Below are positions 32,501-63,811 of a stretch of DNA of 64,000 bases, one piece after another. The notes below the pieces were generated by a model that saw only the letters and a list, made by a program, of their open reading frames with translations, was not told where the DNA came from and made no database searches. The position numbers and the translations under genes were made by a program. Every line of letters begins with the position of its first letter. The first letter of the stretch is position 1. The stretch is from Octopus bimaculoides. Taxonomy: Eukaryota. The stretch is from contig NC_068983.1 in assembly GCF_001194135.2 (NCBI RefSeq), forward strand, positions 122,088,590-122,152,589, read 5' to 3'.

Positions 32501-35500
32501 NNNNNNNNNNNNNNNNNNNNNNNNNNNNNNNNNNNNNNNNNNNNNNNNNNNNNNNNNNNNNNNNNNNNNNNNNNNNNNNNNNNNNNNNNNNNNNNNNNNN
32601 NNNNNNNNNNNNNNNNNNNNNNNNNNNNNNNNNNNNNNNNNNNNNNNNNNNNNNNNNNNNNNNNNNNNNGGCACATAAAAGACACCATTTCGAGCGTAGC
32701 CGTTTTCGTGCGGGTGACACGTAAAAGCACCCACTACACTCTCTGAGTGGTTGGCGTTAGGAAGGGCATCCAGCTGTAGAAACTCTGCCAAATCAGACTG
32801 GAGCCTGGTGTTGCCATCCGGTTTCACCAGTCCTCAGTCAAATCGTCCAACCCATGCTAGCATGGAAAGCGGACGTTAAACGATGATGATGATGATGATG
32901 ACATTGACATTGGGAAACAAACTGTGGGTGTTGAAATATAGCTGATTTATAGCTGATTGAATTAACCACAGAACATACTGGGTTATCATTCTCTTGAAAG
33001 TTGAAGTCAATCTTGATACAATTTCAACTCAAGATGTAAAGAAGGGAAGCTAAATGCTACAAACTAAATACTAACATCCTACCAGTTTTGCTAATCTGGC
33101 AACTGATGATCAATAATTGTTTCTAATTTAAGCATAAAACCAGCCAGCAGTTTTGAGAGGGGGAGGGCCTCATTGATACCAGTACTTGATCGGTGCTTTA
33201 TTTTATTGACATTGGGCAGGATTTGAGCTCGAATAGCCTGATCAATTAGGCATGTATAAGGCAGGACAAAAATTTTTATTACTGTTTCTATATTGAAACA
33301 TAAATATTGTTTGATTTTAAACTGTTGTTTTTGTTTTTAAAATAGCTTCACCTTCATTATCTCCACGGGAGAATATGTCCATGTATTCAAGAACCACTCC
33401 AAATCAGCAGTGAGTACATTTTATCATGTGTACATAACCACATCTGATATTCAAAACTTAGAGACTTTTCTACTTCATAACCTACATAGGATGGAACTCT
33501 TAATTTTGACATGTTCTTGTTAAATATTTATCACTAGTTGCAATACTTAAGAAAAATTTACTTCATTAATTTCACCACTGTAGTAGCCAATTTACATATA
33601 CAAATCTGCATTTGTCTATACATATATACATACATGTATATAGGTGTATCTGTAAGTGTATATGTACGTTCTTCCTTCTCTAGCCTACATGTTTATTTTC
33701 TGTTGGGATCTCTACACCGTTGTTTGACCTGTTAAAAATAGTACACACTAACACTCCAAACATTCTCCTTGATCTGTTTCACACTTCCTAACCCATCCTC
33801 TACCAGAACAAACTTATCTCTGCATCTATCAGATCATCCAAATGCTGGTTATTGCGACTATTCATCACACATTTGCATTCTACACTAGTGGTTCTCAACC
33901 ATTTTTTTTTGTCTATGGACCCCTTTTGACTACTATTTGTTCTGGTGGACCTCAATGTTTAAAAACTATTTTTATAGATACATCATTTAGCATCTACTTT
34001 TCTTGCTGGCATGGGTTAGACGGTTTGACTGGAACTGATAAGCTGGAGAATTGTACCAAGTTCTAATCTGATTTGGCATGGTTTCTACAGTTGGATGCCC
34101 TTCCTAATGCCAACCACTCTAAGAGTGTGATGGATGCTTTTTACATGCCACCAGCATGGATGCTTTTATGTGCCACCAACATAGACACCAGTTATTTGAC
34201 ACCAGCCGTGACTACAATTTCACTTGGCTTGATGAATCTTCTCAAGCACAGCATATTGCCAAAGGTCCTGATCATGTCATCACCTCCATGAGGTCCAATA
34301 TTTAAAGACCATGCTTCACCACCATGCTTCTTTCAAAATTCCTATTTCATTTTTCGTATGTTCACTTGTATAGGTTTGTAATAGGACTTTCTGAGAAAAC
34401 ATGTTTCAGTTGCCAGAAACATGTTAAAATGTATAAAAACCTTAGAGAAAGAGACCTAGCTGTCTCTTGCAATAAATACATCCAAAACAAAATCTTTTTC
34501 GTGGATTCTTAAAATACTACTGCAAATCCCCAATTTACTAGTTTGTCTGCGCAGACCCCCAAAAATCTTATATGGACCCCAGTTGAGAACCACTTCACTA
34601 CACTATACTCACCAACTCCCAGGTCCTGTGGCATTTTAAGTCAGCTGACTGGTCACATTTCTGCCAGTTCTAGGTCAACTGGCCCTGACAGTGTATATTC
34701 TTTCTCTTGACCCATCTGAAACAATAAAACTTTTTATGGTACACATCATTTTTTTTTTTCTTCATCTCAGAAACACATTCCCTATTCAATACAGATTCAC
34801 TTTATATAGTAACTGTCCCTTTTTTAAATTGCCTGTATGACTCTTTTGTTACCATATTCCTGTTGGAATACACTATCTTTGTTTCAGTTAACTTTGAAAA
34901 TAATGAAGAATACAGTAAAATAACTTTGTAATTATTATATTTGGAATATAAGTTAAATGGAAATTTTGATAGAATAAAGGCAACAATGTAATGGAAAGTG
35001 CAAGGAATATTAATGCAATATATGGGGATCGGACAATAAGTGCAAGCCAGTGACAATGGTGATTCCAGAAATTCTGAGCCAGAAACAACAGCCTAGATGA
35101 TGAGCCTCGTCCTGGAAGATCTGTAGAGCTCAATGAGGACATCCTGAAAACCCTGGTGGAACAAAATCCCATTGTAACTGATGAGGAACTAACAGAGAAT
35201 GTTAGATTTGATCTTTCAACCATTCATTGACACCTGTGTGCCATTAGAGAAGTCAGCAAATTGGGTTAATGAGTTCCTCACAAACTTTCCAAGTCTAATC
35301 GTGTGTAGAGAGTGAATGTGTGCTCTTTTTTGCTGTCACATCTCACCAATGAACCATTTTTGGATTGAATAGTGACTGTGATGAGGAATGGGTTCTCTAT
35401 AAAAATGTCAAGTGCCGAAGACAGTGGGTAGGGAAAGGAGAAACAGATTAGAAGTTTTGAATTGTGACAAAGCATAATTTTCATTTAGTATTAATTGAAA

Positions 35501-36787: not shown

Positions 36788-39763
36788 CTTTGTGTCTGTA
36801 TTTGTCCCCCACCACTGCTTGACAATTGGTGTTGGTGTGTTTACATCCTTGTAACTTGGCAGTTCAGCAAAAGTGACTGATTGAATAAATACCAGGCTTT
36901 AAAAAAAAATAAGCCCTGTGGTTGATTTGTTCATCTTAAAGACCTTTCAATGTGGTGCCCCAGCATGGCCACAGTGAAATGACTGAAATAAGTAAAAGAT
37001 AAAAGATATAGACACTGTTTTGTTCAGTTTGACTTCTGATCTTAATCAGGTGTTTTATTCCTGGATGTGGCTATGATCCAAAACTATATTCAAACTAGGA
37101 ACCTTTATTTCTAAACTAAAGGTAGCAATGTATGTATCTTATACCTTATTGTCCAGTTACTTAGTGGATAAGCATATTACTACCTTTAGTTAGGAAATAA
37201 AGGATTCTTAGTTCAAATCTTGTCCATGACTATGTACAAATCCATGAATAATAGATGAAATCTTGTTTATAAATATTATAAATATACACTCTAAAGATGA
37301 GTTTGATAACATTTCATCTTAGATATTTACCTTTTTGCAACTGTCTTATGATTTTCAGGTGTTTAACAGTAACAGCCTAGGAATACCAATGTCCTTCCGT
37401 ACTCCACCATCTCAAAGTACATCTTCAGAAATGGTTGGTATTGTTTTATTGATTTTGTTATACACACGTGCGTGCGTATAAATTATTAGTTGTCCTTAGG
37501 GCTAACTGAAAAAAAATGCACACTCTAAAAAAAATAAAACAGTTATATTTTTATATTGTTGAGCAGTATATTTCTAGTTATAGCATATAACTTGGTTAGA
37601 ATGTTACTAATGGTTCCATGCTGACTATTGCACTTGGCAATAGACAACTCCTCAAACCAGTATTTTGAAGCCTAATTTAGCCTTTAGCACACTGCATTTT
37701 CTCTAGAATTGTTTACTGCCCTGTTAATACATGGGAGTAAACTCATATGATGATATGATGCACCTTCAGTGTGCTAAAGGTTAAGTCAATCTCTTAAAAT
37801 CTGTATCTTTCATGTTCTGATTACTACATTTCTGCTGCACAGCTTAGTGACTGTTATTAGGTTTGTAGTCTCTGAAGATGATCAGGTTATCAGCTTTACA
37901 CTTTGTGAGTCCTGAGGTAGCTTATTAAGCCAATTTTTATATGAAATCTATGGTTACATTGGAGGAACAGAATAGGGAAGTCAGGAACCAGTTGGACACT
38001 TACTTTCTGTGCAGTCCTCCTCTCTTTAACTTCTCTGGTCATATCTGATTCTGAGTGTTTTACTCCAAAGTACACAGCACTATGTCACAGTGAGTGATCT
38101 TGAGCAAGATATTTACCAGTAGACTGTTCTATGTTACACTTTTTCAAGATTGTTTTGAGCATGCCTTTGTAACTCTTCTTTGGTTCACCACACAACTGAA
38201 AGTCAACTGCTCGTTCACCAAAGATCTGTTTGGGGAGTCTGGAGTTAAGATATGCTATATATCTACTCCACCACAGCTGGAATTTGCTTTTTCTCTGATA
38301 TCCTAAAACCTCAATAATTGCTTCCATTTTCCTACTTTTGTCCCTATATAAATATATTTCACACAATCTATCTCTTTTTAATTCTTGGCATCCCTTATGT
38401 TACGATAACGAAAAATTCAGATAAGCAAACCTCTGACTTTTCTTCCCTCTTCCAAATATCCTCCATTCATTCAGTCATAACTAACATATTTAACAATCAC
38501 TAAACACTGGAACCTGTCAAATGTCTGGTACATGAGACACTCTTCTATTTGTGTATTTCTATTTCAGGGAGGAAATTATTTCCCTCCAATGCCAAGTAGA
38601 GTTTCCATTCGAACACCTCCATCTCAGGGCCGAATTGGTAAGTTACTTTCAAATTGTTTAATGAAACACAAACTCATAAAACAAAGTAGTTAGTGAAGAA
38701 TATTTTATTCCATAAATGTTTGGCACATTTGTTACTATAAACTTGCAAGATAGACGACTGTGCTGGTATGGTCATGTGGTGAGAATGGATGAGGATAGCT
38801 GTGTGAAGAAGTTTCACATCCTAGCAGTTGAGGGAACCTGTAGAAGAGGTAGATCCAGGAAGACCCGGGATGAGGTGGTGAGGCATGACCTTAGAACATT
38901 AGGCCTCACCAAGGCAATGACTAGTGATCAAGACCTCTGGAAATATGCTGTGCTTGAGAAGACCCGGCAAGCCAAGTAACCAGCCCACTTATGCGTACCT
39001 TTCCTTCATTGGACACTAAACTTAATATTTTGAAGGTAGTTAGCCTTGGCCTCAGAACAACGAAGCAGTAAAGCATGTCAGTATAAAGAATTGTGGCAAG
39101 TGAAATTGAAATCAAATTCTATGACAGCACCGCATGACTGGCACCTGTGCCAGTGGAGCGCTAAGAGCACCATCTGAGCATGATCGTTGCCAGGGTTGCT
39201 AACTGGCTCCTGTGCCCGTGGCACCTAAAAAGCACCGTTCAAGCGTGATTGTTACTAGCGTCGCCTTACTGGCACTTGTGCCAGTGGCATGTGGAAACAA
39301 ACATTCAAGCGAGATCGTTACCAGTGCCGCTGGACTGGCTCCTGTGCAGGTGGCACGTAAAAAACACTATTTGAGCATGGCCATTGCCAGTACCACCTAA
39401 CTGGCCCTCGTGCCGGTGGCACATAAAAGCACCCACTACACTCTCGGAGTGGTTGGCGTTAGGAAGGGCATCCAGCTGTAGAAACACTGCCAGATCAGAT
39501 TGGAGCCTGGTGCAACCATCTGGCTCACCAGTCCTCAGTCAAACCGTCCAACTCATGCCAGCATGGAAAGCGGACGTTAAATGACGATGATGATGATGAT
39601 GATGATGAATCATCTTTTTTTTTTTAATTTTGTTTGTAGCTGCAACAGTGTTATAATATGAGTCAACTAATATTTTACTATATTTTCCAGATAGTCCTCA
39701 TGCTCCAGTAGTGAGCATGAGTCCATCATCAGCTGTGTTGGAATTATCAAAGAAGTTTACTAG
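16815..39763 (+). CDS. RNF212: RNF212/RNF212B (Zip3/ZHP-3 family) meiotic RING-type E3 ligase; 13 exons traced, terminal exon unresolved
   Basis: Exons 16815-16923, 18462-18523, 22362-22436, 22639-22695 (GC donor), 24590-24657, 26331-26388, 28345-28364, 30873-30922, 33346-33409, 35968-36007, 37359-37433, 38568-38637, 39691-39763. The N-terminus [49 protein letters not shown] is a C3HC4 RING of RNF212 type. It is followed by a coiled coil ([19 protein letters not shown]...[19 protein letters not shown]) and an S/P-rich tail with [14 protein letters not shown], resembling RISMISPPQDGRMG of vertebrate RNF212 as I recall it. The first six exons are high confidence; the tail exons rest on splice signals and phase continuity. 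Confidence 0.9.
17589..18407 (+). mobile_element. Young 5'-truncated RTE-clade LINE inserted in a (TA)n/(CA)n tract
   Basis: [46 protein letters not shown], a long 3' UTR and a (GAT)n tail. Confidence 0.9.
18720..19188 (+). mobile_element. RTE 3' UTR fragment
   Basis: Same 3' UTR and (GAT)n tail as the other copies. Further fragments at about 23424-23660 (+), 24745-24890 (+), 26840-27115 (+), 27170-27432 (+), 49030-49475 (-) and 53735-54030 (-). Confidence 0.85.
19255..20035 (-). mobile_element. Internally deleted mariner element
   Basis: TA-flanked TIRs ttgggttggcaactaagtt / aacttagttgcaaacccaa. HTH ORF 19531-19866 ([17 protein letters not shown]) is joined directly to [17 protein letters not shown], so the catalytic core is deleted. 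Confidence 0.92.
20841..21222 (-). mobile_element. Full-length tRNA-derived SINE (family B)
   Basis: The minus strand begins taggtgcaggagtggctgtgtggt (A box) ... gggttcagtccc (B box), with a central (CA/TA)n linker and a 3' end gtcaaatgactgaaacaagtaa. Other copies at about 10684-11024, 36562-37005, 53590-53720, 54050-54235, 56140-56280, 56605-56760, 57265-57540 and 58150-58400. Confidence 0.8.
25000..25600 (-). mobile_element. Tc1/mariner transposase remnant
   Basis: Minus-strand [13 protein letters not shown]...[29 protein letters not shown], matching the WSDE..FKLNG.VNRHN..YW..ENP motif; ends not resolved. Confidence 0.6.
28593..29271 (+). mobile_element. Internally deleted mariner element (irritans-like)
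   Basis: TA-flanked ~33-bp TIRs tgaggtggtatcaaaaagttcccagactagtt / aactagtctgggaacattttgataccacctca. Fragments [22 protein letters not shown] and [12 protein letters not shown]. Confidence 0.9.
29432..29651. mobile_element. piggyBac-type (TTAA) MITE, about 220 bp
   Basis: Ends ccctttagcat / atgctaaaggg, flanked by ttta / ttaa. Confidence 0.75.
31938..32900 (+). mobile_element. Young 5'-truncated RTE LINE spanning a gap
   Basis: DSFRYLG...[29 protein letters not shown]. The 3' end is near-identical to the 18170-18400 copy; (GAT)n tail. Confidence 0.9.
33886..34595. mobile_element. hAT-type MITE with a nested minus-strand RTE 3' fragment (about 33985-34325)
   Basis: TIRs tagtggttctcaac / gttgagaaccact; degenerate 8-bp TSD ttctacac / cactacac; subterminal atggacccc repeats. 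Confidence 0.7.
34850..35445 (+). mobile_element. Mariner transposase 5' fragment, decayed
   Basis: [26 protein letters not shown]...VSKLG**VPHKL...[13 protein letters not shown]. Confidence 0.8.
37900..38330 (-). mobile_element. Old RTE/BovB-like LINE 3' fragment
   Basis: [22 protein letters not shown]...[18 protein letters not shown]...LAQDHSL, matching QLRW.GH..RM...RLPKQI....K.YKD.LK..L. Confidence 0.65.
38746..39608 (+). mobile_element. RTE LINE 3' fragment carrying a 73-bp foreign insertion
   Basis: [20 protein letters not shown]...EKTRQAK*, 3' UTR subrepeats and a (GAT)n tail. Confidence 0.88.
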
Positions 39764-46416: not shown

Positions 46417-49028
46417 ATGACGTTGACAGACGACGAAGACTTAACAAAATTAATAGCCGCACGTAAGTCGGTACGAGTGAAGTTTGTCAATGACGAAGAC
46501 ATCGTCCAACACATTGTACATCTGAAAGAAAGAAAGAGAGGTGAGAATAACTTAATTATGCAATTGTGTTTTATTGCTAAAATCTGTCACCAAGTTGTTT
46601 ATGTCAAAATTTACTCTACAACGAAGACACTCCGCTACTTTTAATATGATTTCAATACTTTTATTATTTTTCTGAGAAAGGACTCATTATTAGCAGACAT
46701 TGTCTATTGGTATATATCTGTTTCGTAACTTAATTTCCTGGGAAAATTACGGATTGATAGGGTTGTATGGTTATAATTATTAGTTTATGTCTTTGTTTAA
46801 TGCCAAATCAGCACCAATTGAGCTATGACGCAAAGGTTGTCGATCTAAGATTAGGTGTCCCCCCCCCCATACATCTCATCTACTATTCCAAGTATACTGT
46901 GACTCCGCCGAGCTGGGGACGAATTAATCTAGTGAGATTAGTGTAATTGATATTATGTTCAGTTTGAAAAAAACACAACCGGAGAGTATTCTGAGAAAGA
47001 TGCTTATTAGAGACTTTGTGGCTTAAAATATATTAAAGATGACGAGAAGAGGAAAGTTTGGGGCATTTGTGTGGTCTTAGGAAGTGAAGAGGGAACTGAT
47101 GATGACGATAGAGAGAAAAAATGCGGAAACTATGTATTGGTTAGTGAACCATCAGCAATCGGACAAATATTGCTTTTGGATGTTATCTGATATATATGAA
47201 TTTGTAAGAGACACAGTCTCCAGATTTTAGCAAGTTTCTTGTGTTTTTTGATATCCTATGACTGTTAATGTTGTTTTGATGGTAGCTTGGTCACATTTAA
47301 CTGGCCAGAACCAGTAAAAGTGTATATTACAAAGAGGTCAGCAACTGATGAATGCTTAAGTATTTTCTCCCGCTCAAAAATGAAATCTTGACGTCAAGTT
47401 TTCAACATGTCATTTGAGGCCATGATGAGAAATTGTGAGGTGCAGATAAGTCTGTATTCATTTGTATTTTGCTAGTTTTGATGATCTATTGCAGGTGGCC
47501 TTCCACATATGGAGCGTACAGTTTCCAGCGGAGCCAAAAGACAAGCTGTTATGATTAACGACCAAGAAGTTGTACTTGGAAGCAGTGATGAGGAAGATGA
47601 AGTTTATAAATCCTCAAGAGGTATGAGATTAATTATAGATATTTTCTCATGTGTATTGGAAAGGTAGAGGTGGTCAGTTGGTATGATTGCTTAACTGTTG
47701 ATCTGTAAGTGATTGAATCAAACCTTCTTACAAGTGTTGCATTGTGAGCTTGAACAAGATACTTAACTAAATTCTGTTCATCTAAACTAGAATTTTTGGA
47801 GACATTCACTCTTTACAATTGAGTTTGGTTAGAAAAGATATTCAGCTGTACTTACCAGTGTACAAACCACAAAACTATACTTATTACTTGTTCTTACACT
47901 TTTTGAAAATATATAAATTTACATAACCTATCAACCCATTACAATATGAAAATTGGCAGACCATTGTTCATTGGTGCATCTTAAACTATAATGATGCACC
48001 TGTTTACAACCCACTACATTCTTTTCTACTCTTGGCACAAGGCCCGAAACTTTTGGGGAGGGGGCTGGTCAATTAGATCGACCCAGTATGCAACTGGTAC
48101 TTAATTTATCGACCCTGAAAGGATGAAAGGCAAAGTCGATCTCGGCAGAATTTGAACTCAGAACGTAAAGACAGACAAAATACTGCTAAGCATTTTGCCC
48201 AGTGTCCTAATGTTTCTGCCAGCTAGCCACCTTACGACCCACTACATTGGCATTATTAATACCCTGTGTTAACCAGATTACTACATACAATGCTAATGAT
48301 CAATCTACAAACTACAAGGTGTACCAACCATTTTACAGACCACAGTGCTGTTCAAATAATTGCTATTGAACAAAAACAGATATTTGATCATTGAGACTAT
48401 AATCTAAAGTAAAGATTATTTCCAATTAAAAGGAAAACTGCAAATCTTTTATTTTTGTGAAATTTATTGCAGATATTGAAGTTGTTTTTCAATGAAAATT
48501 TACATTTATTTCTAGTTGTCATTAATTTTTATTTTTTGTTTTTATTTTATATTTTTTTAATTATTACCTGAAAAAGCTTTGGTGAATGATGGAGTTGCTG
48601 GTGGTAAAGATTTGTTTACTTTTCGAACACCCAAGAAATCAAATTCAATGACTCAAAAAGGTAAATTGTTCAACTTATCAAGTTTTCAATTTAATTTCTT
48701 CCTTCTGACTGGTTTTTATCATCTTCTCCAGACCTTCAGTTTCTGTTGTAGCTGTGTTCTCCACCACCTTACTTTCATTTATTCTCAATAAGTAATGAAA
48801 TATACTGCCTCATTCAATTGTCTCAGTCAGTATAGAAACACTGACCTAAGTTAGAAGCTGTAGCTAAGCAACTTATTGATCTAGCATCCTAAAGACTTTA
48901 GATGTCCAGCCACTAGTATTTGTTTCTAAAAAAAATTGTGGTTTACTGAAAGGAACATCTGCATATTTCTTAAAATGGCTTAACGAAGGACATTTGATGA
49001 TGAAATATATTATGTATATATAATAATT

Positions 49029-49065
<37 letters not shown>

Positions 49066-52000
49066 GTTTAACGTCCGGTTTCCATGCTAGCATGGGTTGG
49101 ACGATTTGACTGAGGACTGGTGGACCAGGAGGCGACACCAGGCTCCAATCTAATTTGGTAGAGTTTCTACAGCTGGATGCCCTTCCTAACGCCAACCACT
49201 CAGAGAGTGTAGTGGATGTTTTACGTGCCACCGGCACGAGGGCCAGTCAGGCGGTACTGGCGACGGCCACACTCAAAATGGTGTATTTTACGTGCCACCT
49301 GCACAGGAGCCAGTCCATCGGCACTGGCAACGATCTCACTTGAATGTCTTTTCACGTGCTAGGGAGGCGACGTTGGTAACGATCAATGGCCATGCACGAA
49401 ATGGTGTATTTTACGAGTCATCTGCATAGGGGCCAGCCTATCGGCACTGGCAACGATCTTGCTCGGATGTCTTTTCGATTATGCAATATTTTACATATAA
49501 GCATTTGATTATGAAATGTATTGTAAAAAGGGATCTCAAATACCAGATGTTAATGCATTGTCACAGTTGATACTATTAATAATGTTGGATTGGCTGAATG
49601 TGGTCATGATGATGATTTTTTTTTCATTCATCTTGTAGAGAATGATGTTATAAAAGTGAAAATATGAAGTTGGAGTCTGTCAGTGTTAATATTTTATCTG
49701 TAAAATTCATCAACTTATTCCTAGTTTATCTCATCTTTTTCAGCACTTGAATCAAAAACTCCAACCACTCCAAAATCTAAGAATTCTTTGCAAGAATTTA
49801 ACAGACAATATACAGGTAATTTCTATTGGTTTTTAGCCAACAGCTCGTTCTGTGTTTGAGCTGACAAATGGTGATTATATAGTTATTCAATAATTTTCAT
49901 ATTGGAACTTTCCTAAGTTCTCTGAAAAGAGTTAAATTCTAAAGATTCTTGAAAGCTCCTGTATATCACCAATCTATAATCAAAAGCATGAAGTTGGAGT
50001 CTGTCAGTGTTAATATTTTATCTGTAAAATTCATCAACTTATTCCTAGTTTATCTCCTCTTTTTCAGCACTTGAATCAAAAACACCAACCACTCCAAAAT
50101 CTAAGAATTCTTTGCAAGAATTTAACAGACAATATACAGGTAATTTCTATTGGTTTTTAGCCAACAGCTCATTCTGTGTTTGAGCTGACAAATGGTGATT
50201 ATATAGTTCTTCAATAATTTTCATATTGGAACTTTCCCAAGTTCTCTGAAAAGAGTTAAATTCTAAAGATTCTTGAAAGCTCCTANNNNNNNNNNNNNNN
50301 NNNNNNNNNNNNNNNNNNNNNNNNNNNNNNNNNNNNNNNNNNNNNNNNNNNNNNNNNNNNNNNNNNNNNNNNNNNNNNNNTAAGTTCTCTGAAAAGAGTT
50401 AAATTCTAAAGATTCTTGAAAGCTCCTGTATATCACCAATCTATAATCAAAAGCATGAAGTTGGAGTCTGTCAATGTTAATATTTTATCTGTAAAATTCA
50501 TCAACTTATTCCTAGTTTATCTCATCTTTTTCAGCACTTGAATCAAAAACACCAACCACTCCAAAATCTAAGAATTCTTTGCAAGAATTTAACAGACAAT
50601 ATACAGGTAATTTCTATTGGTTTTTAGCCAACAGCTCATTCTGTGTTTGAGCTGACAAATGGTGATTATATAGTTCTTCAATAATTTTCATATTGGAACT
50701 TTCCCAAGTTCTCTGAAAAGAGTTAAATTCTAAAGATTCTTGAAAGCTCCTATATATCACCAATCTATAATCAAAAGCATTCCAACCTTGACTGTCTCCC
50801 CACTCAGATATAGAGTATCTATTTTATCCAATGTATCCATCTTTTTTTAAAGGCAGTAGAATGTGATTTGAGAGAGATTTGACTATTATTTCTTGAATGT
50901 TGAACATCTTGAAATGATGTGGAAACTGTGAAACATTGATAGAGATTAAGATTGCAATATTTGGAATTATTAGTAGTGTAGACATTGTCATCCAGATACA
51001 TTGAAAGATGGAAGAACTTGTTTGCAGTTATAGTTTGGAAATTTTTTTTAGTATACTTCCAGATTGCTCTTCCTTTTTGTATGTGCATTTCAGATAAAAT
51101 ATTTTGACTGGAAGAGCAATCTGGAAGTATACTAAAAAATTTTCCAAACAATTAGAAATTCAAATTCACAGTGAGAACTTAATCTTTTGCTTTTGGTAAA
51201 TGTTCCTGATTAATCTATTACACCTTTACCAAATTGTTTTATATAGATGACTAGGTAACAGAATATTTGATGAAATATTTCCTTTTATCTACCCCAAATT
51301 TGGTTGCAAATAGGAAATTTAATATTCTGTCAAGGAGCAAAGATCACTTCGTCTCTTGTTGGAAAAAGGAAAAACTTCCCTCCTTCTCCTCTATATTTTC
51401 ATATATTTGGTGAAATATAATTTCTTTATAGCACTGTAATGTTATTCTGTTATAAGGAATCACTCAGGAATAATTACTTGTGAATGATCTATTCAAATAC
51501 TGCAATATTGTTAACTATTGTGGCACATAATGTCGTTTGATGTGGATCACTTATGGTTTAGTTAGAAAATAATTCAGATTATCTTTTCAGCAGAAATGAT
51601 AATAATCTCTGTACCTTGTATCTCGGATTACTAACTGTCTTTTGTCTCTAGTCTTTAGTTGAGACAGAACATAACTGTGTATTAACTGCTGGGAACCTGT
51701 GACATTATAGAAGAATTTGTACTGGATAATTCCAAGTTGGAGGTGGATGAAATCTAAGGTTGTGATTCTTTCAGCTCATTGTTTACAGAAAAGGCCTATC
51801 TTCATCATTTTTAGAATAGCTTTCCCATGCTTGTCTGTGTTGGACAGAACTTTTCCAATGCAGCATCTTACCATTTATTACTTTCCTTTGTCATCTCTTT
51901 TGTGAGATTCAACATCCTGGAATCAACTTTCACAACTTCTGCTCATTTCTTCTTTGGTTTTCTTCCACTTGGTTCTCCTGGCTCATTTTTACCCAATTGT

Positions 52001-55000
52001 GTTTTTACATCCACATGCATTACATGTCTGTATCAATACAATCTTTTCTTAAGTGCACTACACCTGACTCCTCTTTCCTCCAGTTTTCTCTCAGCTCATC
52101 TGTACCATATTGCTCATGCACACTAACATTGCACATCTAGCAGGGCAGACTTGCTTCATTTCTATCAGCAGAGATAATAGTTCCCTGAACTTTTTTCCCT
52201 CCTGTTCTTGTTCTGGCTACTACACTTACAGACTCCATCCTTCCACTACTGATTAGGTAACCTAACAAAAATTATCAGCTGCTCTTACAGATCATTTCAG
52301 GCATTAAGAAGAATTTATTTTATTAGTGCTCTGATTGCTAATTACTCTTGTGCATCTTCTACATGTAAGTCTGTTTTCTATGACAATTTACTTGTGCTCC
52401 CAGTACAACTCTTGTTCACCACAGATCGTATTAAGTAACTCTATGAAATTCATTTGAACCTGGCCATTTCCATGATAGCAGCAGATTCCTATCTTCTTTT
52501 CTACTTACTAAAACTTTATCCTTCACCAACTTTGCACTGAGGCATCTTAGTTGTTTTTTTTGTGTTTATAAATACTATAATCATGCCTTATCACCATTAG
52601 AGAGCTATATTTATTATCCAGCCCTGACACTTCTCTTCCCGATACAGATTTCCATTAGTTGTGGTCTAGTGATTAGTCCTGGCTAATGGCGGGATTTGAT
52701 ATATATATATACATGATGATGATGATGATATAGGTGTACATATACATCTATATGTATACATATACATCTCTCTCTCTCTCTCTNNNNNNNNNNNNNNNNN
52801 NNNNNNNNNNNNNNNNNNNNNNNNNNNNNNNNNNNNNNNNNNNNNNNNNNNNNNNNNNNNNNNNNNNNNNNNNNNNNNNNNNNNNNNNNNNNNNNNNNNN
52901 NNNNNNNNNNNNNNNNNNNNNNNNNNNNNNNNNNNNNNNNNNNNNNNNNNNNNNNNNNNNNNNNNNNNNNNNNNNNNNNNNNNNNNNNNNNNNNNNNNNN
53001 NNNNNNNNNNNNNNNNNNNNNNNNNNNNNTATCGAAATGTGATTGTTTCAGTTTTGATACTGAAATAGTTTTCTTTTACTGTCAGTGTTTCTCCTTCCTT
53101 TCTTTTTGTATTTGTTGTTGGATCGTTCATAAAGGTTCATAAGAGAAAGTAAGAGTTGAAAGGATTTGTAAAAGTATTAGAAAGAGAAAATAAAATTTCA
53201 TTAGAGGGGAAAATGTTAATTTGTGTAATTTTATGGATTTTATTCGTAATTGGGAGTTATTTTGACTGAAAAAATAACGCTGTGACCTAAGTTATGGTAT
53301 TTAGAATATTAATTGCGATTCTTTCATCCAAGAAATTTGGAATTGTGTAAATGTATGAATTTTAAACATACACAGAAAATTTGCCTTTTATAGATGAGAT
53401 AAGATGCATGATGTATTTGTCAACTTTATTTCTTCAGGCCTTCAATCAAGATCTCCAAATACTCCAAAATCTAGGAAGCCATTATCTGAATCCAATAGAC
53501 ATGAAACAGGTAAGACAAAAGAAGGATTTTGTCCCTGATGTGTTTTAATAGTTAGCACATAAATAATGATCTATAACAAACATACATGCATGGCTGTGTA
53601 GTTTAGTAGCTTACTTTACCACCATATGGTTTGAGGTTCAATCCTACTGCATGGCACCTTGGCCAAGTTTCTTTTACTGTAATCCCAGGCCAACTAATGC
53701 CTTGTAAGTGAATTTGTTAGAAACTGTGGAACATTATCATCTAATGTTTGCTTTCCATGCTGTCATGGGTTAGACTGTTTGATTGAAACTAGTAAGCTCA
53801 AGAACTGCACCAGGTTCCAATCTGATTTGGCATGGTTTCTACAGCTGGATGCCCTTCCTAACGCCAACCACTCCAAGAGTGTTATGGTTGCTTTCTAAGT
53901 GCCACTGGTACAGGTGTCATTTACATGACACCAGCAATAGCCACAAGTACAATTTCACTTGGTTTGATGAGTCTTCTCAACCACAACATATCGCCACCTC
54001 TGTGAGGCCCAACTTTGGAAGATCATGCTTCTGGCAGAATGCGTATCTGTGTGTGTGTGTGTGTCACCACCACCACTTGACAACAAATATTGGTTTGTTA
54101 ACATCTCTATAACTTAGCAATTTGACAAAAGAAACCAATAGAATAAGTACCAAACTTAAATAATAAGTACTGGGAGTAATCTGACTAAAACTCTTCAAGG
54201 TGATGCTCCAGCATTGTCACTGAAACATGTAAAAGAAGGTACAAGGCAGCAAATTTTGGGCAGACAGTCTGATCAACGACTCCTTCTGGATGGAAAAAAG
54301 ACAATGTTTTTTTAACTTTGAACATAAATAGCTCTAACTAAATTCCATGAGATATTTGTCTATTCTCTACTGATTCTATCAGAGCTTTTATCTAACATCT
54401 GCCATCCCATTCAAGTATGATGATAAATGTAAGACAGCCATCATCTTCAGCAACACATTTCCAGTTGTTTTAGACATCCAGTACAGTTACACAGTTTAAA
54501 TATTCCTTGAAAATAATAAGTCAAGAAATTGTTGTTTAGCCCCAAATCAACCTTCACTGAGTAGACTTATCAGAGCCATTCTAGATGTTGCCATCCCATC
54601 TAGGACAATATTATTTAATGTGTCTTTTCCTTTTCTAACATGATAGGCTGTGAGTTGAGGGAGATTTAGCTGCTATTTTTAGTAAGTCATACAACAATTT
54701 AGCGGCTGTTGTTGGCTAAAAGTCAAAGAAGTTTTCTTCCCCCACCCATCTCTAACTCTGCATTAACCACTACATCCAGTCCTTCATTCCCAGAGCATAT
54801 TCTCTGTAGGATGCCCTCCATAGTCTCTTTTTTGTTTTTGAGTTATTCATGAAGAACAACTACATCAGTCTCAGAATTCTTGGAAGGGCTTTGAAAGGCA
54901 AAGATAGACCCTTCTTCTAGACCAAAGCATTTAAAAAAAAATAGAAAGTCAATGAGCTGAACCTTAATAGTAAAACCAAGTGAACCATCATCCTTCTACT

Positions 55001-58000
55001 TTTCAAAGGTGTTACTAAAATATTTCCTTTTCTACATTTCAGGTAGTCTTGCTATGACCTTACGGAAGAAATCACACAAAAGACCAGAAACCACTACACC
55101 ATATCGGCTCCGTAAAAGAAATCATTTTGGTAAGTATTTCTTTTCCCACTTTTTCTTTTCTAGGCCATTTGTAACTTCCAGCCTGCTATCTCTGGAGTTT
55201 ACTATGATGTCCTAGTCTGGATTAGATTGTTCTTTCCCAACACTTCATTTATGAGAGACCTACTTTGTATTTCTTCTTCCTATTAAATCGGCCTTAACAC
55301 TTTAACATTTAAACCAGCCATATCTGGCTCAAATATTCTACCTGCTTTATGTTCAAACTGGCCAGATTCAGCCTCTCACACCTACCCTACAATGTCATTC
55401 TAAAAGTAAACAATGGCATCATTGAAATCTCAAATCTATGATTAATTCAAAGTAGTATGAATAAATAAGCATTAAATTTGACAGAGTACCCTGAATGCTA
55501 AAAGGTCAAGAGATCTATATATATTGTTAATTTCTTTGTCTTGTAACTTCCTGTTTACATGGTTGAGGCGGCTTTATGGATGTTTTCCAATTTACACCTT
55601 CTTGAAATGATTACTGTTGTAACTGGCCACCACAAACCATTCACTCACAATGTAGGAGTAGAACTTGTCAGCCAGGTAGGTTGTGGACAGCTGAATTGTA
55701 GGTCATGCTCATGGATACACACTAAATCTGTGTTTGTAAGGTTTGAACTTCTAACTTTGTGGGTAATAATCTAGTACTTTAACCTCATGACTTGTCTTAT
55801 TGATCAAATTTTCACTGAAGCCAAAGATATTTGAATTTTTTTACAGCTTACAATGATGAATCCTCCAGTGACAGTTTATATTCTTCCAGTGATGAAAGTG
55901 ACTCAAGCTTTGAACCCCAACAGAAGGTCCTTTCAAACACTGCTGATTTAACTATCAAGGAGTCTAATGATTCCTCTAAAATTAAGCCAACTTCTGAAGC
56001 TAACACAAAAATTTCAACGCCAAGTGCTTCCAAAAAAATGCCTGAGGAAGATATGGTATGTATGTTACTGTATATAGTATGTATGAAGTATAAGTTATTT
56101 TTGTATATTACATTATATATTATCATACATGTGAAAGCATGTGACCTAGAGGTTTGGTTGTTGCACTCAAAATCACAAGATCGTGGGTTTGATTCCTGGA
56201 CCAGGTGATGCATTGTGTTCTTGAGCAAACCATTTCACTTCACATTGCTCTGGTCTGCTCAAATCTAAATGAATAACCCCGCAACAGAATAGCCTTCTAA
56301 TAAGGAGGAATGCTGGCCTGCTTGAAGCTAAAACAATGCGCAGAGCATTGTGGTCAGCGATGTATAACAACATCCAATAGTCTGGTTGATACTGTGATAC
56401 CACAATTATCCTACATATGCTGTCATATGAAAGAACAGGTTTTTAAGATAAGTTCTAAGAATTTGTACGTGCTATACTTGCTGCATAAGATTACAACAAA
56501 CTTTACACTTATCACAAGATCATAATTAATGAATTCTGCTATTTTGTTTTTGAGGCAAACTAGCTGATGTTTCTACATTTTAACAAAGTATAAAAAAGTT
56601 GTGGGTGTGGCTGTGTGGTAAGAAGTTTGCTTCCCAACCACATGATTCAGGGTTCGGTCCCACTACCTGGTACCTTGAGCAAGTGTCTCATATTATAGTC
56701 ACAGGCCAATCAACGCCTTGTAAGTGGATTTGGTAGATGAAAACTGAAAGGAGACTGTCATATGTGTGTGTGTCTATATGTATATGTTGGTATGTACCTA
56801 TGTGTGTATTAAGTGAATCTCTGTTGCATTTTATTACATGTGCCACCAATTTTGTTTTTCATATAGCATAGCCAACATATATCATGTTGAACAGAACTAA
56901 ACCACTTGCTTGGTATCCTGTTTAGTTGCTTAAAAATAAAGTTAGTAAAAAAAGACAATACTGATTTTCACTTAAAAATCATTGAAAAAACATTTGAACT
57001 TGTTACCTTCATTAGTTTCTGAGATACCGCATTAGAAACTTAATGAACCAATCAGCCAAACAAATGAAAAAAAATAAAAGTTTTTCTTTTTTTTGGTTAG
57101 ATATGCAAGATGACTGAATATTTATAGAGTGGTATAATAAATGTTAGCTTTATAAAGTAAGAAATTGTGTTAATAACATTTGAAATACATTTTTCTTTAG
57201 GTTTCTCTGAGCCAGTATAACAATAAAAAAATAAACATGGTAAATAACAATCATTTTAACAGTAGGTGCAGGCGTAACTGTGGTTAAGAAACTTGCTTCC
57301 CAATCACGTGGTCTTGGGTTCAGTCCCACTACATGGCATCTTGAGCAAGTGCCTTCTACTATAGTCCCAGGCCAACTGAGCTTTGTGCTTGTGAGTAGAT
57401 TTGGTTGGTGGAAACTGAGAGAAGACTTGTGTGTGTAACCAACCAACCAACCAATAGTTTGTTAAAAATTACTGATAGAATAACTACCAGGATTTAAATA
57501 TAAGTACCGGGGTCGATGTTTGACTAGACCCTTCTAAGTAGTGCCAAAAACTAGTGAAAGTTTAAAAAAAACTGTAAATGTGTCTTTTATGTTCATGTGA
57601 CATTGCATAAAACTTGTCTTATATTCTAACAGCCATCTGTTGTAGAACAGTATTTTGAAGTACATTCTACAAAAGGACTTACATCAGACCGAACACTATC
57701 TCGACTGGATATGCCACGAATTGATTTAGACGATTTACAGAAACTTCTAAAAAATGTCTCAGGAAACCATTGCAAGGAGTACAAACAGCTTTTTGACAAA
57801 TATCCTGAATATTTTGACAAATGGTTATTTTTACTCAGGTAATCTATTTCATGAATTCACTGTCACCTGTAGTTCTTATTTGTTATCTTATATGCTAGTG
57901 TGTAACTAAATGACTAAAGAGTACTAAAAGCTGTTGAGATTGGTGATGTATTACTAATTATTATGGAAGTGATAGTGTGTCCATATACATGCACAGATAG

Positions 58001-58608: not shown

Positions 58609-61600
58609 CACAGGGGTTGGACAAAATAACGGTAGCACAAGAAATTTATTTTAATATGGGGTAGGACCGCCTTTGGCAGTAATTACAGCTTGAATTCTAC
58701 GAGGTATGGACTCATACAAAGTTTGAATGGCTTCCAAACAAATTTTTGTCCATTCTTGAGCTAAAACAGTCTCCAGTTTTTGTAGTGATGATGATGGAAG
58801 ATATCGACCCCTTACTTGTTTTTCTAAAATGCACCATAAATGTTCAACTTCACTAGAATGTTCCTTGTGCCATTTAGTAACAACTTTAGCTGTGTGAATT
58901 GGTGCATTATCATCCTGAAATATTGCATTTCTTCCCCGGAAACAGTTCCGCAACCATAGGATGAATTTGATCAGATAAAATGCTTAAATAGTCTTGACTA
59001 TTAATTCTACCATGAAGGGAAACCAGTGGGCCGGCAGATTTCCAAGATATAGCNNNNNNNNNNNNNNNNNNNNNNNNNNNNNNNNNNNNNNNNNNNNNNN
59101 NNNNNNNNNNNNNNNNNNNNNNNNNNNNNNNNNNNNNNNNNNNNNNNNNNNNNNNNNNNNNNNNNNNNNNNNNNNNNNNNNNNNNNNNNNNNNNNNNNNN
59201 NNNNNNNNNNNNNNNNNNNNNNNNNNNNNNNNNNNNNNNNNNNNNNNNNNNNNNNNNNNNNNNNNNNNNNNAAAGTAGTGGTTTTCTGATTGCAGCACTC
59301 CTGTGAAATCCGGCTTTGTGCAGCTCCCGGTGAACAGTTTTTGTGGAAACTGTATTCTTAAGATGGTCATTAAGCTCTGCAGTAATTTTGGGAGCTGTAC
59401 TTTGGTGATCCTTTCTAACAATTCGCGTAAGAGTCCGACAGTCCCTATCTGAAACTTTTGGCTTTCTTCCGGAGTTTTATTTTGATGAGGAGGTTTTTCC
59501 CTCTTTCTCAAAGGCTGTCATTACTTTCGAGACAGTACTTCTTGATACACACCAAACATTTCAGCTGTTTTCATTATGCTAGTGCCTGCCATACGAGCAT
59601 CAACAATTTGACCTCTTTGAAAGTCCGATAGATCTATCATTTTAATTACCTTTTTCTGATGATATCTGAAATGAAACAGCAATTTTAGCAAAACATATTA
59701 GGCCACACTAATAATAAGTCAAAAAGCATAAAAATAAACAAGCTTTTGATGGTTTTATAGATATTTCAAAATTATGATGTTAGGTGTTTCCATTATTTTG
59801 TCCAACCCCTGTATATAGAGAGAAACTGTGTGTGTGTGTATGGGGATGAGATACTGCTTATGCAGCAGCAGATTCTGTTATACATGTATGGGTGTATTAC
59901 ACTGTATTGCAAGTGTCTTACTACACTGTAATTATTACTCTATACTGTATTTCATAATAATGTGACTGCTGCACTGTATAGCACTGTTATATTGTGCAGT
60001 GTATTAACTGCTTTTATACTAATTTCTATAAGTCATTAATACAGATCTTTTTTTTTCTCAGTTATGGATTCAATATTTTGGTATATGGATTTGGTTCCAA
60101 GAAATCATTATTAGAAAAATTCTTCTCTAAAAAACTCAATGGATATGATCATGTTATTGTCAATGGTTTCTTCCCAAGTCTGTCAATAAAACACGTATGT
60201 TGACCTTTCATTTTATTTTATTTCACTGATTTTGAAGATGATGATGTTACGGCCTGAAGAGCCATGGGTTGGGTGGAATTCCAGTGTGTTGAAATGCTGG
60301 GAAAAAGTCATCAGGATTTTACATCAGTTTTCCATGCTGGGGTTGGATGGGTGATTATTACACTCTTTGATGGCTTTGAAGACCAAATCCCACATGTAAG
60401 TTACATTTTTTTTTCATGGTTTCTGTAGCCAGATGCCCTTTCTAACCACACAGGCACACTTGTGCCTATACATGTTCACTTTCCCTAATGAATGCCTGTT
60501 GACAAAGGGCAAACTAATTGAAATAAAGTATAAATATTAATATCTCAAGAGCTAGTAATCTCTTCTCATAAAAAAGAAATTAATATATCTTTGAGAGAGC
60601 AGCCCAATGTGAAGCACAGTACAAAATAGTAATAATGAATAAATAGTTTTTTAAAAAAATAACTAAAGTCAATAGTCCATAAAATAATCATCTATTTAAA
60701 TTGAGTTAATTGTTGATGAAATTTCTCTAACATGTGAATCATGTTTTATAACTACAGTTTAAAGAACTTAATCAATGTTATTGTCTTTCACATTTTAGAT
60801 TTTAGATTCAATAACAGAAGAGATTCTTAATGAAGAAGGAACATTTAAAACCTTGTTGGACCAGTGTGAATTTATTAAGAAGTCTCTAGAAGGTCAGTAG
60901 CTTTTTATTTGTTTCCCTTATTAAATTGCTATTTTTATTTTTTTGTGATTTATAAATTAGTGAAAGGAATAGTGACAGTACTTATAACCTTTGCTGGTTC
61001 TTATAGACTGGTGTGACTTATTTTCAGTTTTTAACATCTGTAGGCTGGTGTTTGCTATGTGAACAAAGAATGAATTGCAGTTCTGGAGATAACTTAAATG
61101 TTGGTTTATAGCTTTGGGTACAAGATCACACGTTTGTAATGAAAGAACTATAGTTAACTAAATTAATGCAGTACATTACTGGTATCTGTAGGCAAAATTA
61201 GATATAGCAAGGTTAGAAAAAACATAAAGGGATGTTTAAAAAAATGGAAAAAATTCATTTAGTCAGCCTTCTATCACTTCTGCCATTCTGTCAACCTTCT
61301 TCTTCTATCAAAGATACAAGGGTGACAAATTTTTGTGAGGGGGTACATCCACTTAAATTAAACCAGTAATTGACTAGTTCTTATTTTATCAACTTGGAAA
61401 GCTGAAAGCCAAAATCACTCAGGTGGAATTTGCATTAAATGCTGCAGGAGATTTTGTCCACCTCTCCATTAATGTACTCCTGAATCTATCATGAAGCTGA
61501 ATATTAGCAGGAACATGGAAATTTATATTATATAATGTTTGAACCCACTGGAGTTTTCTTATCACAAAGCAATATTACATTGTTGACGACTGCTTTTCAG

Positions 61601-63811
61601 TTCTGCTTGTTCTATATTCAAAGTAATGTGAAGAAGATATGGTAAGTAGGAAGTGTCAGTTGTTTCAACAAGCAGAAATACATGCTGAATGACATAACTC
61701 TTTGCCTGTCCAAAGCATTTTCATTTGTTTTTCTCCATGCTTGTTTTCAGACTGTTAGTTAGCCCTTGTTTCATATGTTCTGAGCAATCTAAAGTTCCTC
61801 TAGATGTTGAAAAAAAAATTGGGAATGTGTATTATGTACAGAGTTGGCCAAAAGTCACATGACTGTAAATCAAAATTCCATAAATTCTATCTGTAGTTCT
61901 GTATTAACTCAAATGGAAAAATGTGTTGCTCAAGGACTTCAGTTTGAACAATTTTCATGATGTTTCATGTTTAGATGCTTTTATTGAATTCATTCAATTG
62001 TTAAACATAAATAAATCTTGGAATTAAATGGTTTTGATTTACTGTCCAGTGACTTTTGGCCAACCCTGTATAATGCATAGATACCAAGGAAACAACCTGA
62101 GTGTTACATGTAATACACAGGACAGGCAAAAGATTTTAAGTACAGTAGCTCAGAAAGAATTGAACTTACATTCTGGGTCTTAATGCCACTATCCACCACT
62201 ACTGCTGCACAGCAGGGCTATAGGAAGGTTTCATGATAGTAATATTTGGATGATGAATTGTGTTGTTAACTTATGTAATTAACAATGTATGTCTTGGTTT
62301 TTTCATTTACTTTTAATACAGATGATGACAGAGATTTCTTCCTGTTAATCCATAATATTGATGGCATCATGTTACGTTCAGCTAAAGTCCAGAATATATT
62401 TAGTTTCCTATGTAAAATTAAGCGTTTCCATATGGTCGCTTCTGTTGATCACATAAATGCGCCTTTAAGTAAGTCATTTAACTCCTCTTTCTCTCTCTCT
62501 CGTTTTGCATCCATTTTTTCTTGCTTGTGTACATGGAAGGGTTTTTGTGATGAAATCATTATTTTTGCAGCTGGATGGTGTCTTTTCCTACTGCTTACAG
62601 TAGGAATCATAATTCTGTAGTATTATTTCTTCTATGTTAATAAGAACATTGACAGAATTTTTCTAATATTTTAAACTTTGTTATGAATGGCTAGCTGCAA
62701 CTGAGCAAGTTGGTATTATACTGAGACAGCTCACAAGTGCATTAATAGAATGCAGTGAGGAATTCAAATTTCAAATTCCATTATAGACCTTGAAATGACA
62801 GTAAACAAATTCAAATCTGTCTTTGACATAAAATCTCCTTGATCCAACAATCCAATGTGACATTATTTCATTGAAAGACCAACAACACTGTATACAATTA
62901 TGTCTATTACTATAGCTGACGCTTTACAGAAAATTAGGGAGTAAATTCCATACATAAATACAAGTGTTGACTTGAACCCAGGTTTTATGAGTGAATGAAT
63001 GAAAACAAAATGGTTAAGTTACTCATCGTAGGTTTCTAGTTGGAATTTAAACCACAAATTCCTAGATATATTTCCATGTATAAAATGTTTTGTTATGTAC
63101 TCATTTCCAGCTCACATCAGTCTGGAAGAAGACAGATCATCTATATGATTACTTCATCTGTTGAATAAAGCTACTAAGTTTTCCTCTACAAATCTCCTTA
63201 TTGTCTTTAATATAGAGCTAACAGGAAAGATTTGGTGACGTTTTTCAACTGGAACAATGCTGTTACCAAATCCTCCTCAATAATTTCCATACTGTCTTTA
63301 GCATATAGCCAACATGGAAGCTTTTATGTATATACTCAGTATGCACAATATAGAAACCAAAACTGCTTCAATAAGCCCTGTATAGTGTAAAATAGGGGTC
63401 ATGCATTTCTACTTCTAAAAATTATTATTACCATGTCCTATAGTTGATCAAATACTTCATTCTCGTGGTGCTGATCAGAGAACTATTCGAAGACAACAAA
63501 ACCCTAACCTTATATTGGCCTAGTTCATGCAATTTTTTCATTGTTTTTATTGTAATGTCATTTTGCTGTTTCAGTCTGGGACCAGATGCGCTACATCAGA
63601 TTCAATTGGTTGTGGTGTGATGTAACTACTTATGAGCCTTACATGGAGGAAACAGCCTATGAAAATTCCTTGATGGTGCAACAATCTGGACGTTTAGCAC
63701 TCAGCTCCCTGTCACATGTCATGCATAGTTTAACATCAAATGCTAAAGGGATATTCATGCTTCTTGCTCGCTATCAAATGGAAAATCAAGCCGGTGTTCA
63801 GAACTATCAAG
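46417..63811 (+). CDS. ORC2: Origin recognition complex subunit 2 (3' end continues beyond the window)
   Basis: Exons 46417-46540, 47495-47620, 48577-48660, 49744-49815 (tandem copies at 50068-50139 and 50535-50606), 53438-53509, 55043-55129, 55847-56055, 57633-57838, 60062-60194, 60799-60892, 62322-62468, 63575-63811; phases are consistent. ORC2-type motifs include [19 protein letters not shown]...[60 protein letters not shown] and [24 protein letters not shown]. Confidence 0.96.
49030..49475 (-). mobile_element. RTE 3' UTR fragment in ORC2 intron 3
   Basis: (CAT)n followed by cgtttaacgtccg..., the reverse complement of the RTE tail. Confidence 0.85.
50068..50139 (+). CDS. ORC2: Tandem duplicate of ORC2 exon 4 (72 nt, phase 1-1)
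   Basis: Intact ttttcag acceptor and gtaatt donor; encodes [24 protein letters not shown], the same as 49744-49815 apart from one synonymous change. Confidence 0.6.
50535..50606 (+). CDS. ORC2: Third assembled copy of ORC2 exon 4 (after an N-gap; may be allelic)
   Basis: Same 72-nt exon with intact splice sites; lies downstream of the gap at 50286-50380. Confidence 0.45.
55298..55505. mobile_element. Second copy of the TTAA MITE family
   Basis: The internal sequence (ctacctgctttat..caaactggccagat..cctctcac, ttgaaatctcaaa, aaataagcatta.atttgacagag) matches 29432-29651; flanked by ttaa / tcaa. A partial inverted copy lies near 58030-58130. Confidence 0.7.
58420..58610. repeat. (TA)n/(TG)n compound microsatellite
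   Basis: Direct inspection; it explains the IYIY/CVCV ORFs. Other microsatellites: (ATT)n 6935-6975, (CTA)n 7122-7146, (TA/TG)n 36712-36782, (GA)n 18627-18648. Confidence 0.95.
58611..59811 (-). mobile_element. Tc1-like (DD34E-type) transposon, decayed, spanning a gap
   Basis: TIRs caggggttggacaaaataa / ttattttgtccaacccctg + TA. ORF 58651-58953 has [13 protein letters not shown]...EHLW..LE...[19 protein letters not shown], with the WPxxSPDLNP segment deleted. Confidence 0.9.
61839..62068. mobile_element. 230-bp Tc1/mariner-type MITE
   Basis: TA-flanked imperfect ~38-bp TIRs cagagttggccaaaagtcacatgactgtaaatcaaaa / ttttgatttactgtccagtgacttttggccaaccctg. Confidence 0.85.

Follow-up and report, generated by a model that had tools for sequence, protein, structure and literature searches.

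A probable recent tandem duplication of a 72-nucleotide exon encoding an S/T-P motif in the ORC2 gene of Octopus bimaculoides

A stretch of 64,000 nucleotides (nt) from the genome of Octopus bimaculoides (RefSeq assembly GCF_001194135.2, contig NC_068983.1, positions 122,088,590 to 122,152,589 of the forward strand) was analysed and is referred to in the following as the window. It contains part of a gene that is identified by its sequence as ORC2, encoding origin recognition complex (ORC) subunit 2, and within this gene a segment of 324 base pairs (bp) is repeated head to tail. The repeat is probably the result of a real and evolutionarily recent tandem duplication with at least two copies. 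The duplicated segment would comprise one symmetrical exon of 72 nt, termed E4 (copies E4a, E4b and E4c), plus flanking intron, and the exon encodes two minimal Ser/Thr-Pro (S/T-P) sites, the second of which aligns with a reported cyclin-dependent kinase (CDK) site of human ORC2. A diverged exon further downstream, termed E4', suggests that the same exon was already duplicated long before. For the protein, the consequence is likely no more than a slight adjustment of the multisite control that CDK exerts on ORC, and it may well be near-neutral.

The repeat array and its exons

The 324-nt unit is repeated across 49664-50780 of the forward strand, inside the intron/exon region of ORC2, with unit starts at 49664, 49988 and 50455 and an identity of 98-99% among the copies. 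Tandem Repeats Finder (TRF) returned a period of 324 nt with 98% matches and a score of 1207. By blastn, the first copy was recovered in the window at 49664-49987 with 100% identity, at 49988-50284 with 98.3% (curtailed by a gap of N), at 50381-50454 with 100% (matching unit positions 251-324) and at 50455-50778 with 98.1%; the E-values of 1e-34 to 1e-169 show that the repeat is not due to chance. Elsewhere in the window blastn found no further match to the unit except for the one diverged exon E4'.

A column-by-column comparison of the copies revealed seven variant sites, which are given here as 0-based offsets within the unit with the alleles in the order copy 1/copy 2/fragment after the gap/copy 3: 19 (G/G/-/A), 69 (A/C/-/A), 96 (T/A/-/A), 183 (G/A/-/A), 221 (A/C/-/C), 250 (T/C/T/C) and 297 (G/A/G/A). 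Copies 1 and 2 differ at six sites and are joined without any gap, and copy 3 shares the copy-2 allele at five of the seven sites. The junction between copies 1 and 2 is free of N (AAAAGCAT followed directly by GAAGTTGG), and the junction from unit end to unit start (TCAAAAGCAT joined to GAAGTTGGAGTC) is present twice in the assembly, in both cases without N. Just 2 nt, AT, are common to the end of the unit and the flank on the left of the array. An overlap of 2 nt cannot yield a junction from unit end to unit start out of single-copy DNA, which makes a single copy unlikely, and the existence of at least two copies is supported by the gap-free junction.

Each copy of the unit carries one intact exon E4 (Table 1), the phase of which is 1-1 with respect to E3, the exon upstream, which ends with one base carried over. 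The exon copies are mutually 99-100% identical, encode an identical peptide and are separated by introns of 252 nt. Each is preceded by an acceptor ending in ctttttcag in front of CACTTG and followed by a donor in which ATACAG adjoins gtaatt; the sole difference in the nearby splice signals is a C for A at position -11 in the acceptor tract of E4b. The same length, the same phase, sequence similarity and intact splice sites, by which tandem exon duplications are recognised, are thus found in all copies. Only one variant site, at offset 96, is exonic, and it is synonymous (ACT/ACA, both Thr). In gene models with zero, one, two or three copies of E4 the frame is open throughout the 11 exons; the S/T-P sites number 5, 7, 9 and 11 and the net charges are +5, +7, +9 and +11, respectively, so that every extra copy would add 24 residues with two minimal S/T-P sites and a net charge of +2. 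The predicted splice junctions are ACTCAAAAAG to CACTTGAATC for E3 to E4, CAATATACAG to CACTTGAATC for E4 to E4, which is impossible from a single copy, and CAATATACAG to GCCTTCAATC for E4 to E4'. A metagenome scan with the exon sequence gave no matches.

The diverged exon E4' was detected by blastn of the unit, with a match of 74% over 84 nt at 53430-53513 (E=1.5e-9), and was recovered by tblastn (E=4e-5). It has the same length of 72 nt, the same phase 1-1 and canonical ag/gt splice sites, and compared with E4 it is identical at 51 of 72 nt (71%) and at 12 of 24 residues, the similarity ending a few bases beyond the splice sites. From these 24 codons alone, the number of synonymous substitutions per site (dS) amounts to about 0.55 and the ratio of non-synonymous to synonymous substitutions (dN/dS) to about 0.59. 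Judged by the alignment, the exon was duplicated at this locus long before, and the 324-bp duplication is a second round. E4' and E4 both kept their length, phase, open frame and splice sites, suggesting that the locus tolerates extra copies.

The ORC2 gene and the conserved motif encoded by E4

The assignment of the gene to ORC2 rests on sequence similarity. A protein search with the N-terminal 307 residues resulted in 41 hits, all of which carry PF04084, with the ORC2 proteins of Dreissena, Patella and Lottia as top hits (about 35% identity, 75-95% query coverage, E down to 6e-41). The RecA-like ORC2 domain PF04084 itself was matched with E=1.6e-23 and 83.7 bits against a cutoff of 25.1; the match covers residues 324-418 of the three-copy model, lies downstream of E4 and stops where the query ended. 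In a search of PDB sequences human ORC2 (7cte_B) was aligned over residues 10-303, and a Drosophila ORC2 chain was also matched. The exon chain (Table 1) was derived from tblastn with homologues plus splice-site inspection; all exons have ag/gt borders, the exons E2, E3, E4, E4' and E5 are each of phase 1-1, and the gene extends past the end of the window after E11 (63811).

E4 lies in the N-terminal part of the protein, upstream of PF04084, in which 76% of the residues are disorder-promoting and 22% hydrophobic, compared to 54% and 42% in the rest of the protein. It was reported that human ORC2 has an intrinsically disordered region (IDR) at residues 30-230, which contains a conserved essential stretch (Chou et al., 2021), and in yeast Orc2 all CDK sites cluster in the N-terminal IDR. 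Disorder of the octopus N-terminus is argued here from the composition, the limits of the Pfam domain and this literature. CDK regulation of the ORC2 N-terminus is already established. For human ORC2, T116 (ELAKTPQKSVSF) and T226 are listed as CDK2 substrates (PMC5217639), with reference to Lee et al. (2012; Journal of Biological Chemistry, JBC, 287:11891). In the HMMER alignment to 7cte_B, human T116-P117 stands opposite the second TP of E4, and in a multiple alignment the start of E4, A-L-E-S-K-T-P, coincides with a motif conserved in metazoans (ASE.KTP in molluscs, ASELA.TP in vertebrates). By the alignment and the conservation of the column, an S/T-P site of E4 is homologous to a reported CDK site, and as judged from these alignments E4 encodes an ancient ORC2 motif, A-x-E-x-K-T-P, the human counterpart of which includes Thr116. 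Human ORC2 differs in having one copy of the motif, compared to two (E4 plus E4') to five predicted in the octopus gene, and in the context of T116, which is T-P-Q-K, whereas the putative phosphosites of E4 are minimal S/T-P sites.

A further comparison is offered by other molluscs. In the ORC2 of Patella vulgata, Lottia gigantea and Dreissena polymorpha, the corresponding region has the same position between the motifs FRTPKK and TTPYRLRKR and likewise holds several KTPKS-like motifs, of which there are three to four in the exon of the gastropods and a larger number in Dreissena. Intron positions were compared for Patella and Lottia. In both, the counterpart of E3 has 84 nt, and the next exon, a single one with a length of about 111-129 nt, encodes 37-43 residues with three to four TP motifs (ASEVKTPKS...STPVKTPKSKGTTPGKK and ASEAKTPKS...KTPKSALKTPKSKSTTPGK); after it comes, in Patella, the counterpart of E5 with 87 nt. 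The gastropods thus have the motifs within one exon, whereas in the octopus each module of 24 residues is a 72-nt exon of its own. E4 and E4' together encode 48 residues, compared to the 37-43 residues of the gastropod exon and an inter-motif spacing of about 48 residues in human ORC2. Since E4 plus E4' take the position of a single exon of the gastropods and agree with the human spacing, both are likely to be included in the mRNA, and by extension paralogous exons at this locus are probably co-included rather than used as alternatives. As to the Lottia locus (about 2835-3566), the deposited gene model lacks the TTPYRLRKR exon that is present in Patella and in the window and has a 30-nt exon (LHNYAIYARA) without counterpart elsewhere; this gene model is probably imperfect.

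With these results the observations in the preliminary description of the window, which had been made from the letters alone, are confirmed, and its interpretation is partly supported. TRF, blastn and the column comparison confirm the 324-bp unit with the three starts given above, and an intact 72-nt exon of phase 1-1 with canonical ag/gt sites and two TP dipeptides, the two minimal S/T-P sites, was found at each of the three places named for it (E4a-c in Table 1). The gene had correctly been called ORC2, in agreement with the molluscan top matches, the PF04084 score and the exon chain, and the exon had correctly been placed in the N-terminal region, i.e., the low-hydrophobicity part outside the domain. 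The single-nucleotide variant proposed there as diagnostic and synonymous corresponds to offset 96, the sole exonic variant, and the variant pattern was described exactly, with a post-gap fragment that ends like copy 1, a copy 3 that ends like copy 2, and the ambiguity following from it. That the duplication is recent agrees with a divergence of about 2% between the copies, compared to 29% between E4' and E4.

Assembly gap and copy number

The array is interrupted by a gap of 95 N, which falls within intronic sequence of the unit, 146 nt past the donor of the copy-2 exon (50139) and 154 nt before the acceptor of the copy-3 exon (50535), so that no reading frame is broken by it. The flanks of the gap are out of register: offset 297 is the last one of the left contig and offset 250 the first one of the right contig, and 95 N would put the right flank at offset 69 ((298+95) mod 324 = 69). 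This mismatch in register means that the real missing length is -372, -48, +276 or similar. With a distance of -372 the locus would have two copies and the 372 nt on each side would be the same DNA, with two mismatches (99.46% identity). A distance of -48 corresponds to three copies and a 48-nt overlap, also with two mismatches, as the first and the last base of the overlap disagree. With +276, four copies would be present and 276 nt missing, a further unit being partly in the gap, and no conflicts arise.

Both contig ends lie exactly at variant sites, for which the chance is about (7/324)^2 = 5e-4, and the break is therefore ascribed to unresolved near-identical copies or haplotypes and not to a coverage hole. 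Measured between its flanks, the assembled array extends over 1117 nt, a value intermediate between those expected for three (972) and four copies (1296) and far from that for two (648). There are seven gaps in the 64 kb, and the lengths of the others are variable and non-default (216-582), so that the value of 95 looks measured, which speaks somewhat against two copies. Redundancy of the flanks was looked for at the remaining six gaps of the window and none was found; these gaps are located at simple or interspersed repeats. Taken as the true number, three copies, as assembled, is a tentative first choice. Two copies is possible, though on the unlikely side, and the same holds for four or more, while a single copy is very improbable. 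Deriving the copy number from the contig break points by de Bruijn-graph reasoning was tried and not relied on, as no usual odd k fits 297 and 250 together; k=48 with at least three different unit tails alone reproduces both contig ends, and this is reasoning only and was likewise not relied on.

Interpretation and alternative explanations

A real and recent duplication of the 324-bp segment within ORC2 is probable. It would most likely have originated by slippage or end-joining at the 2-nt microhomology. Given identical splice signals, introns of 252 nt and an exon length divisible by three, co-inclusion is the default expectation, and the copies of E4 would likely all be present in the mRNA. 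Every extra copy would then lengthen the disordered N-terminal region by the 24 residues and add the two minimal S/T-P sites and the net charge of +2 given above. The effect of this is likely to be small, because the number of TP motifs at this place already varies among molluscs. The preliminary description had proposed that including, skipping or choosing copies changes the number of CDK sites and the charge without a frameshift; this is retained as far as the open models with zero to three copies and their shifting counts go, while its functional weight is below what was implied.

Several observations weigh against a duplication of this extent and importance. The sites in E4 read TPTT and TPKS, neither of which is a full S/T-P-x-K/R consensus; within the N-terminal region the full consensus is found only in E3 (TPKK) and E5 (TPYR). 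Differences among the copies amount to 1/72 in the exon and 5/226 in the intron (Fisher p=1), the single exonic one being synonymous, and a signal of selection on the new copies is thus absent from this comparison. Moreover, 49914-50285 and 50381-50752 (372 nt) are 99.46% identical, with mismatches at offsets 19 and 69. Ko et al. (2022; PMC9516828) described duplicates with a gap between them as the pattern of false duplications, among them false exon gains, in short-read assemblies, and copy 3, which lies beyond the gap and brings this redundancy with it, fits the pattern: near-identical sequence flanks an N gap within a gene and an exon is added. The combination of a gap and near-allelic identity is found for this pair of segments and is not found for copies 1 and 2, which, unlike the false gains, are joined without a gap and have six differences, so that copy 3 alone is at risk. 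The three-copy amplification of the preliminary description therefore stands for at least two copies, by the gap-free junction, and is doubtful for the third, which is behind the gap and a near-exact replica of the 372 nt in front of it.

Accordingly, the locus might have two copies, with the contig after the gap being an unmerged, allelic or error-bearing second version of the same 372 nt. This is a possible explanation, although an unlikely one. Next to the redundancy with its two mismatches, it predicts that at offsets 250 and 297 the fragment has the alleles of copy 1 and copy 3 those of copy 2, which is what is seen. However, it requires a distance of -372, where the scaffolder estimated +95 nt, a value that looks measured; the span is 1117 nt instead of the 648 nt expected; there is no obvious reason why the contigs should break exactly at offsets 297 and 250; and the other six gaps lack such redundancy of their flanks. 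An artefact comprising the whole duplication, i.e., a single-copy locus of which two haplotypes were laid in tandem, is far less probable still. The assembly is indeed rich in gaps, with seven in 64 kb, and the difference of about 2% between copies could in principle be allelic, but the junction from unit end to unit start would be absent from a single-copy locus and is nevertheless assembled twice without N, and the 2 nt shared by unit end and left flank are too few for an overlap or a k-mer mis-join.

The copies might also be real with not all of them being used, either because just a single one enters the mRNA (by mutually exclusive splicing or as a fixed choice) or because skipping of the array is variable; in that case the protein would stay as it is or would alternate between near-identical isoforms. 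Same length, same phase and homology are classical hallmarks of mutually exclusive exons, and the isoforms with zero to three copies are all in frame, so that skipping is tolerated. This explanation is nonetheless quite unlikely, since an exon length that is a multiple of three brings no penalty by frameshift or nonsense-mediated decay (NMD), introns of 252 nt between the exons impose no steric block, and a choice among copies that encode one peptide changes nothing; the fit of E4 plus E4' to the gastropod exon length and the human spacing also argues for co-inclusion. An RNA structure of the docking/selector type was rejected, as a scan for inverted repeats gave weak AT-rich arms (best 71-79%) and their complementarity is not convincing. 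None of the mechanisms of mutually exclusive clusters, i.e., frameshift, short intron or a convincing docking/selector pair, was thus found in the array. In the opposite direction, the 324-bp unit could be a coding minisatellite whose copy number (2, 3, 4 or more) varies by haplotype or individual, with all copies spliced in. In that case copy-number differences between haplotypes would have left the assembler unable to close the gap. This possibility is rated as improbable, somewhat below that of copies left unused; if true, it would provide a natural allelic series in ORC2 phospho-valency, with the number of Thr116-type CDK motifs differing between individuals.

Relation to known exon duplications and significance

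Tandem exon duplication in animal genes is a subject on which Kondrashov and Koonin in 2001 and Letunic, Copley and Bork in 2002 reportedly wrote. The process is common and well described (Ivanov and Pervouchine, 2022; PMC9013439). Like the known cases, the octopus exons are adjacent, homologous, of equal length and equal phase and have intact splice sites, with exon plus intron having been copied, and two generations are seen here, E4'/E4 and E4a/b/c. Unlike them, of which most of those studied are old and mutually exclusive, the new copies share about 98% identity and code for one and the same peptide, their length is a multiple of three and no mechanism of exclusivity is visible. From the sequence features, an expansion of a protein repeat is more likely than exclusive use.

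In the literature an expansion of the Thr116-type motif at the level of exons was not found described, the relevant clade being outside the search. If the extra exons of the probable duplication are real and spliced, they would give an ORC2 with two to five tandem copies of the one N-terminal motif that is shared by molluscs and man and is a CDK target in human cells, and thereby a natural experiment on the way in which phosphosite number within a disordered region modulates the behaviour of ORC. The repeat region would here be growing by duplication of exons, while the two gastropods compared have several motifs in one exon. There is also a warning for annotation: automatic gene models would hold one to three copies depending on the treatment of the gap, and a claim of a cephalopod-specific ORC2 expansion made from this assembly would be unsafe.

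Table 1. Repeat units, assembly gap and predicted ORC2 exons in the window
Feature	Position	Strand	Description	Method
Repeat unit copy 1	49664-49987	+	complete, 324 nt	TRF, blastn, column comparison
Repeat unit copy 2	49988-50285	+	unit offsets 0-297, ended by gap	blastn, column comparison
Assembly gap	50286-50380		95 N, intronic part of unit	register comparison
Post-gap fragment	50381-50454	+	74 nt, unit offsets 250-323, copy-1 alleles T250 and G297	column comparison
Repeat unit copy 3	50455-50778	+	followed by unique sequence	repeat finder, blastn, column comparison
Exon E1	46417-46540	+	start codon, MTLTDDEDL...	tblastn, splice sites
Exon E2	47495-47620	+	126 nt, phase 1-1	splice sites
Exon E3	48577-48660	+	84 nt, phase 1-1; same length as Patella/Lottia counterpart	tblastn, splice sites
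Exon E4a	49744-49815	+	72 nt, phase 1-1, Thr codon ACT	splice-site inspection
Exon E4b	50068-50139	+	72 nt, phase 1-1, peptide as E4a, Thr codon ACA	splice-site inspection
Exon E4c	50535-50606	+	72 nt, phase 1-1, peptide as E4a, Thr codon ACA	splice-site inspection
Exon E4'	53438-53509	+	72 nt, phase 1-1, canonical ag/gt	blastn, alignment, tblastn
Exon E5	55043-55129	+	87 nt, phase 1-1; length equal to Patella exon	tblastn, splice sites
Exon E6	55847-56055	+	acidic Ser-rich stretch	splice sites, alignment
Exon E7	57633-57838	+	conserved part of protein starts here	tblastn, splice sites, HMMER
Exon E8	60062-60194	+		tblastn, splice sites
Exon E9	60799-60892	+		tblastn, splice sites
Exon E10	62322-62468	+		tblastn, splice sites
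Exon E11	63575-63811	+		tblastn, splice sites

Surrounding sequence of the window

The array is preceded, in the ORC2 intron just upstream of it, by a copy (49100-49480) of an interspersed repeat family that has at least nine copies in the window, in both orientations, with 70-92% identity and, internally, a sub-repeat of about 123 nt arranged in tandem. The other copies are located at approximately 18075-18349, 18845-19142, 23462-23603, 26909-27387, 32706-32847, 34055-34156, 39171-39548 and 53808-53911. Most of them adjoin an ATC/GAT microsatellite, and the gaps at 17859-18074 and 32249-32669 end beside copies of the family. An Rfam scan of the whole window gave no family at the gathering score, and none matched the interspersed repeat. 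An (ATC)12 tract at 49030-49065 and a (GAT)5 tract at 52715-52729 allow a perfect pairing of 17 nt (-28 kcal/mol) that brackets all copies of E4; as a splicing device this pairing was rejected, because the microsatellites adjoin interspersed repeats, and it is probably a by-product of insertion.

Upstream of ORC2, exons of an asparaginyl-tRNA synthetase are found at about 3170-6505 (+), with best database matches of at most 82% identity. An open frame with a RING finger at 16809-16964 (+) matches PF14634 (zf-RING_5) with 42.7 bits against a cutoff of 27.9 and probably represents, from this match, one exon of a third gene located between those for the tRNA synthetase and ORC2. Open frames resembling remnants of transposases of the Tc1/mariner type are located on the minus strand at 15946-16401, 58654-58983 and 59524-59697. 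The two latter, for which no Pfam match was obtained, flank the gap 59054-59271 in the intron that separates E7 from E8 of ORC2; the former has weak matches to HTH_Tnp_Tc3_2 and HTH_38 below the Pfam cutoff.

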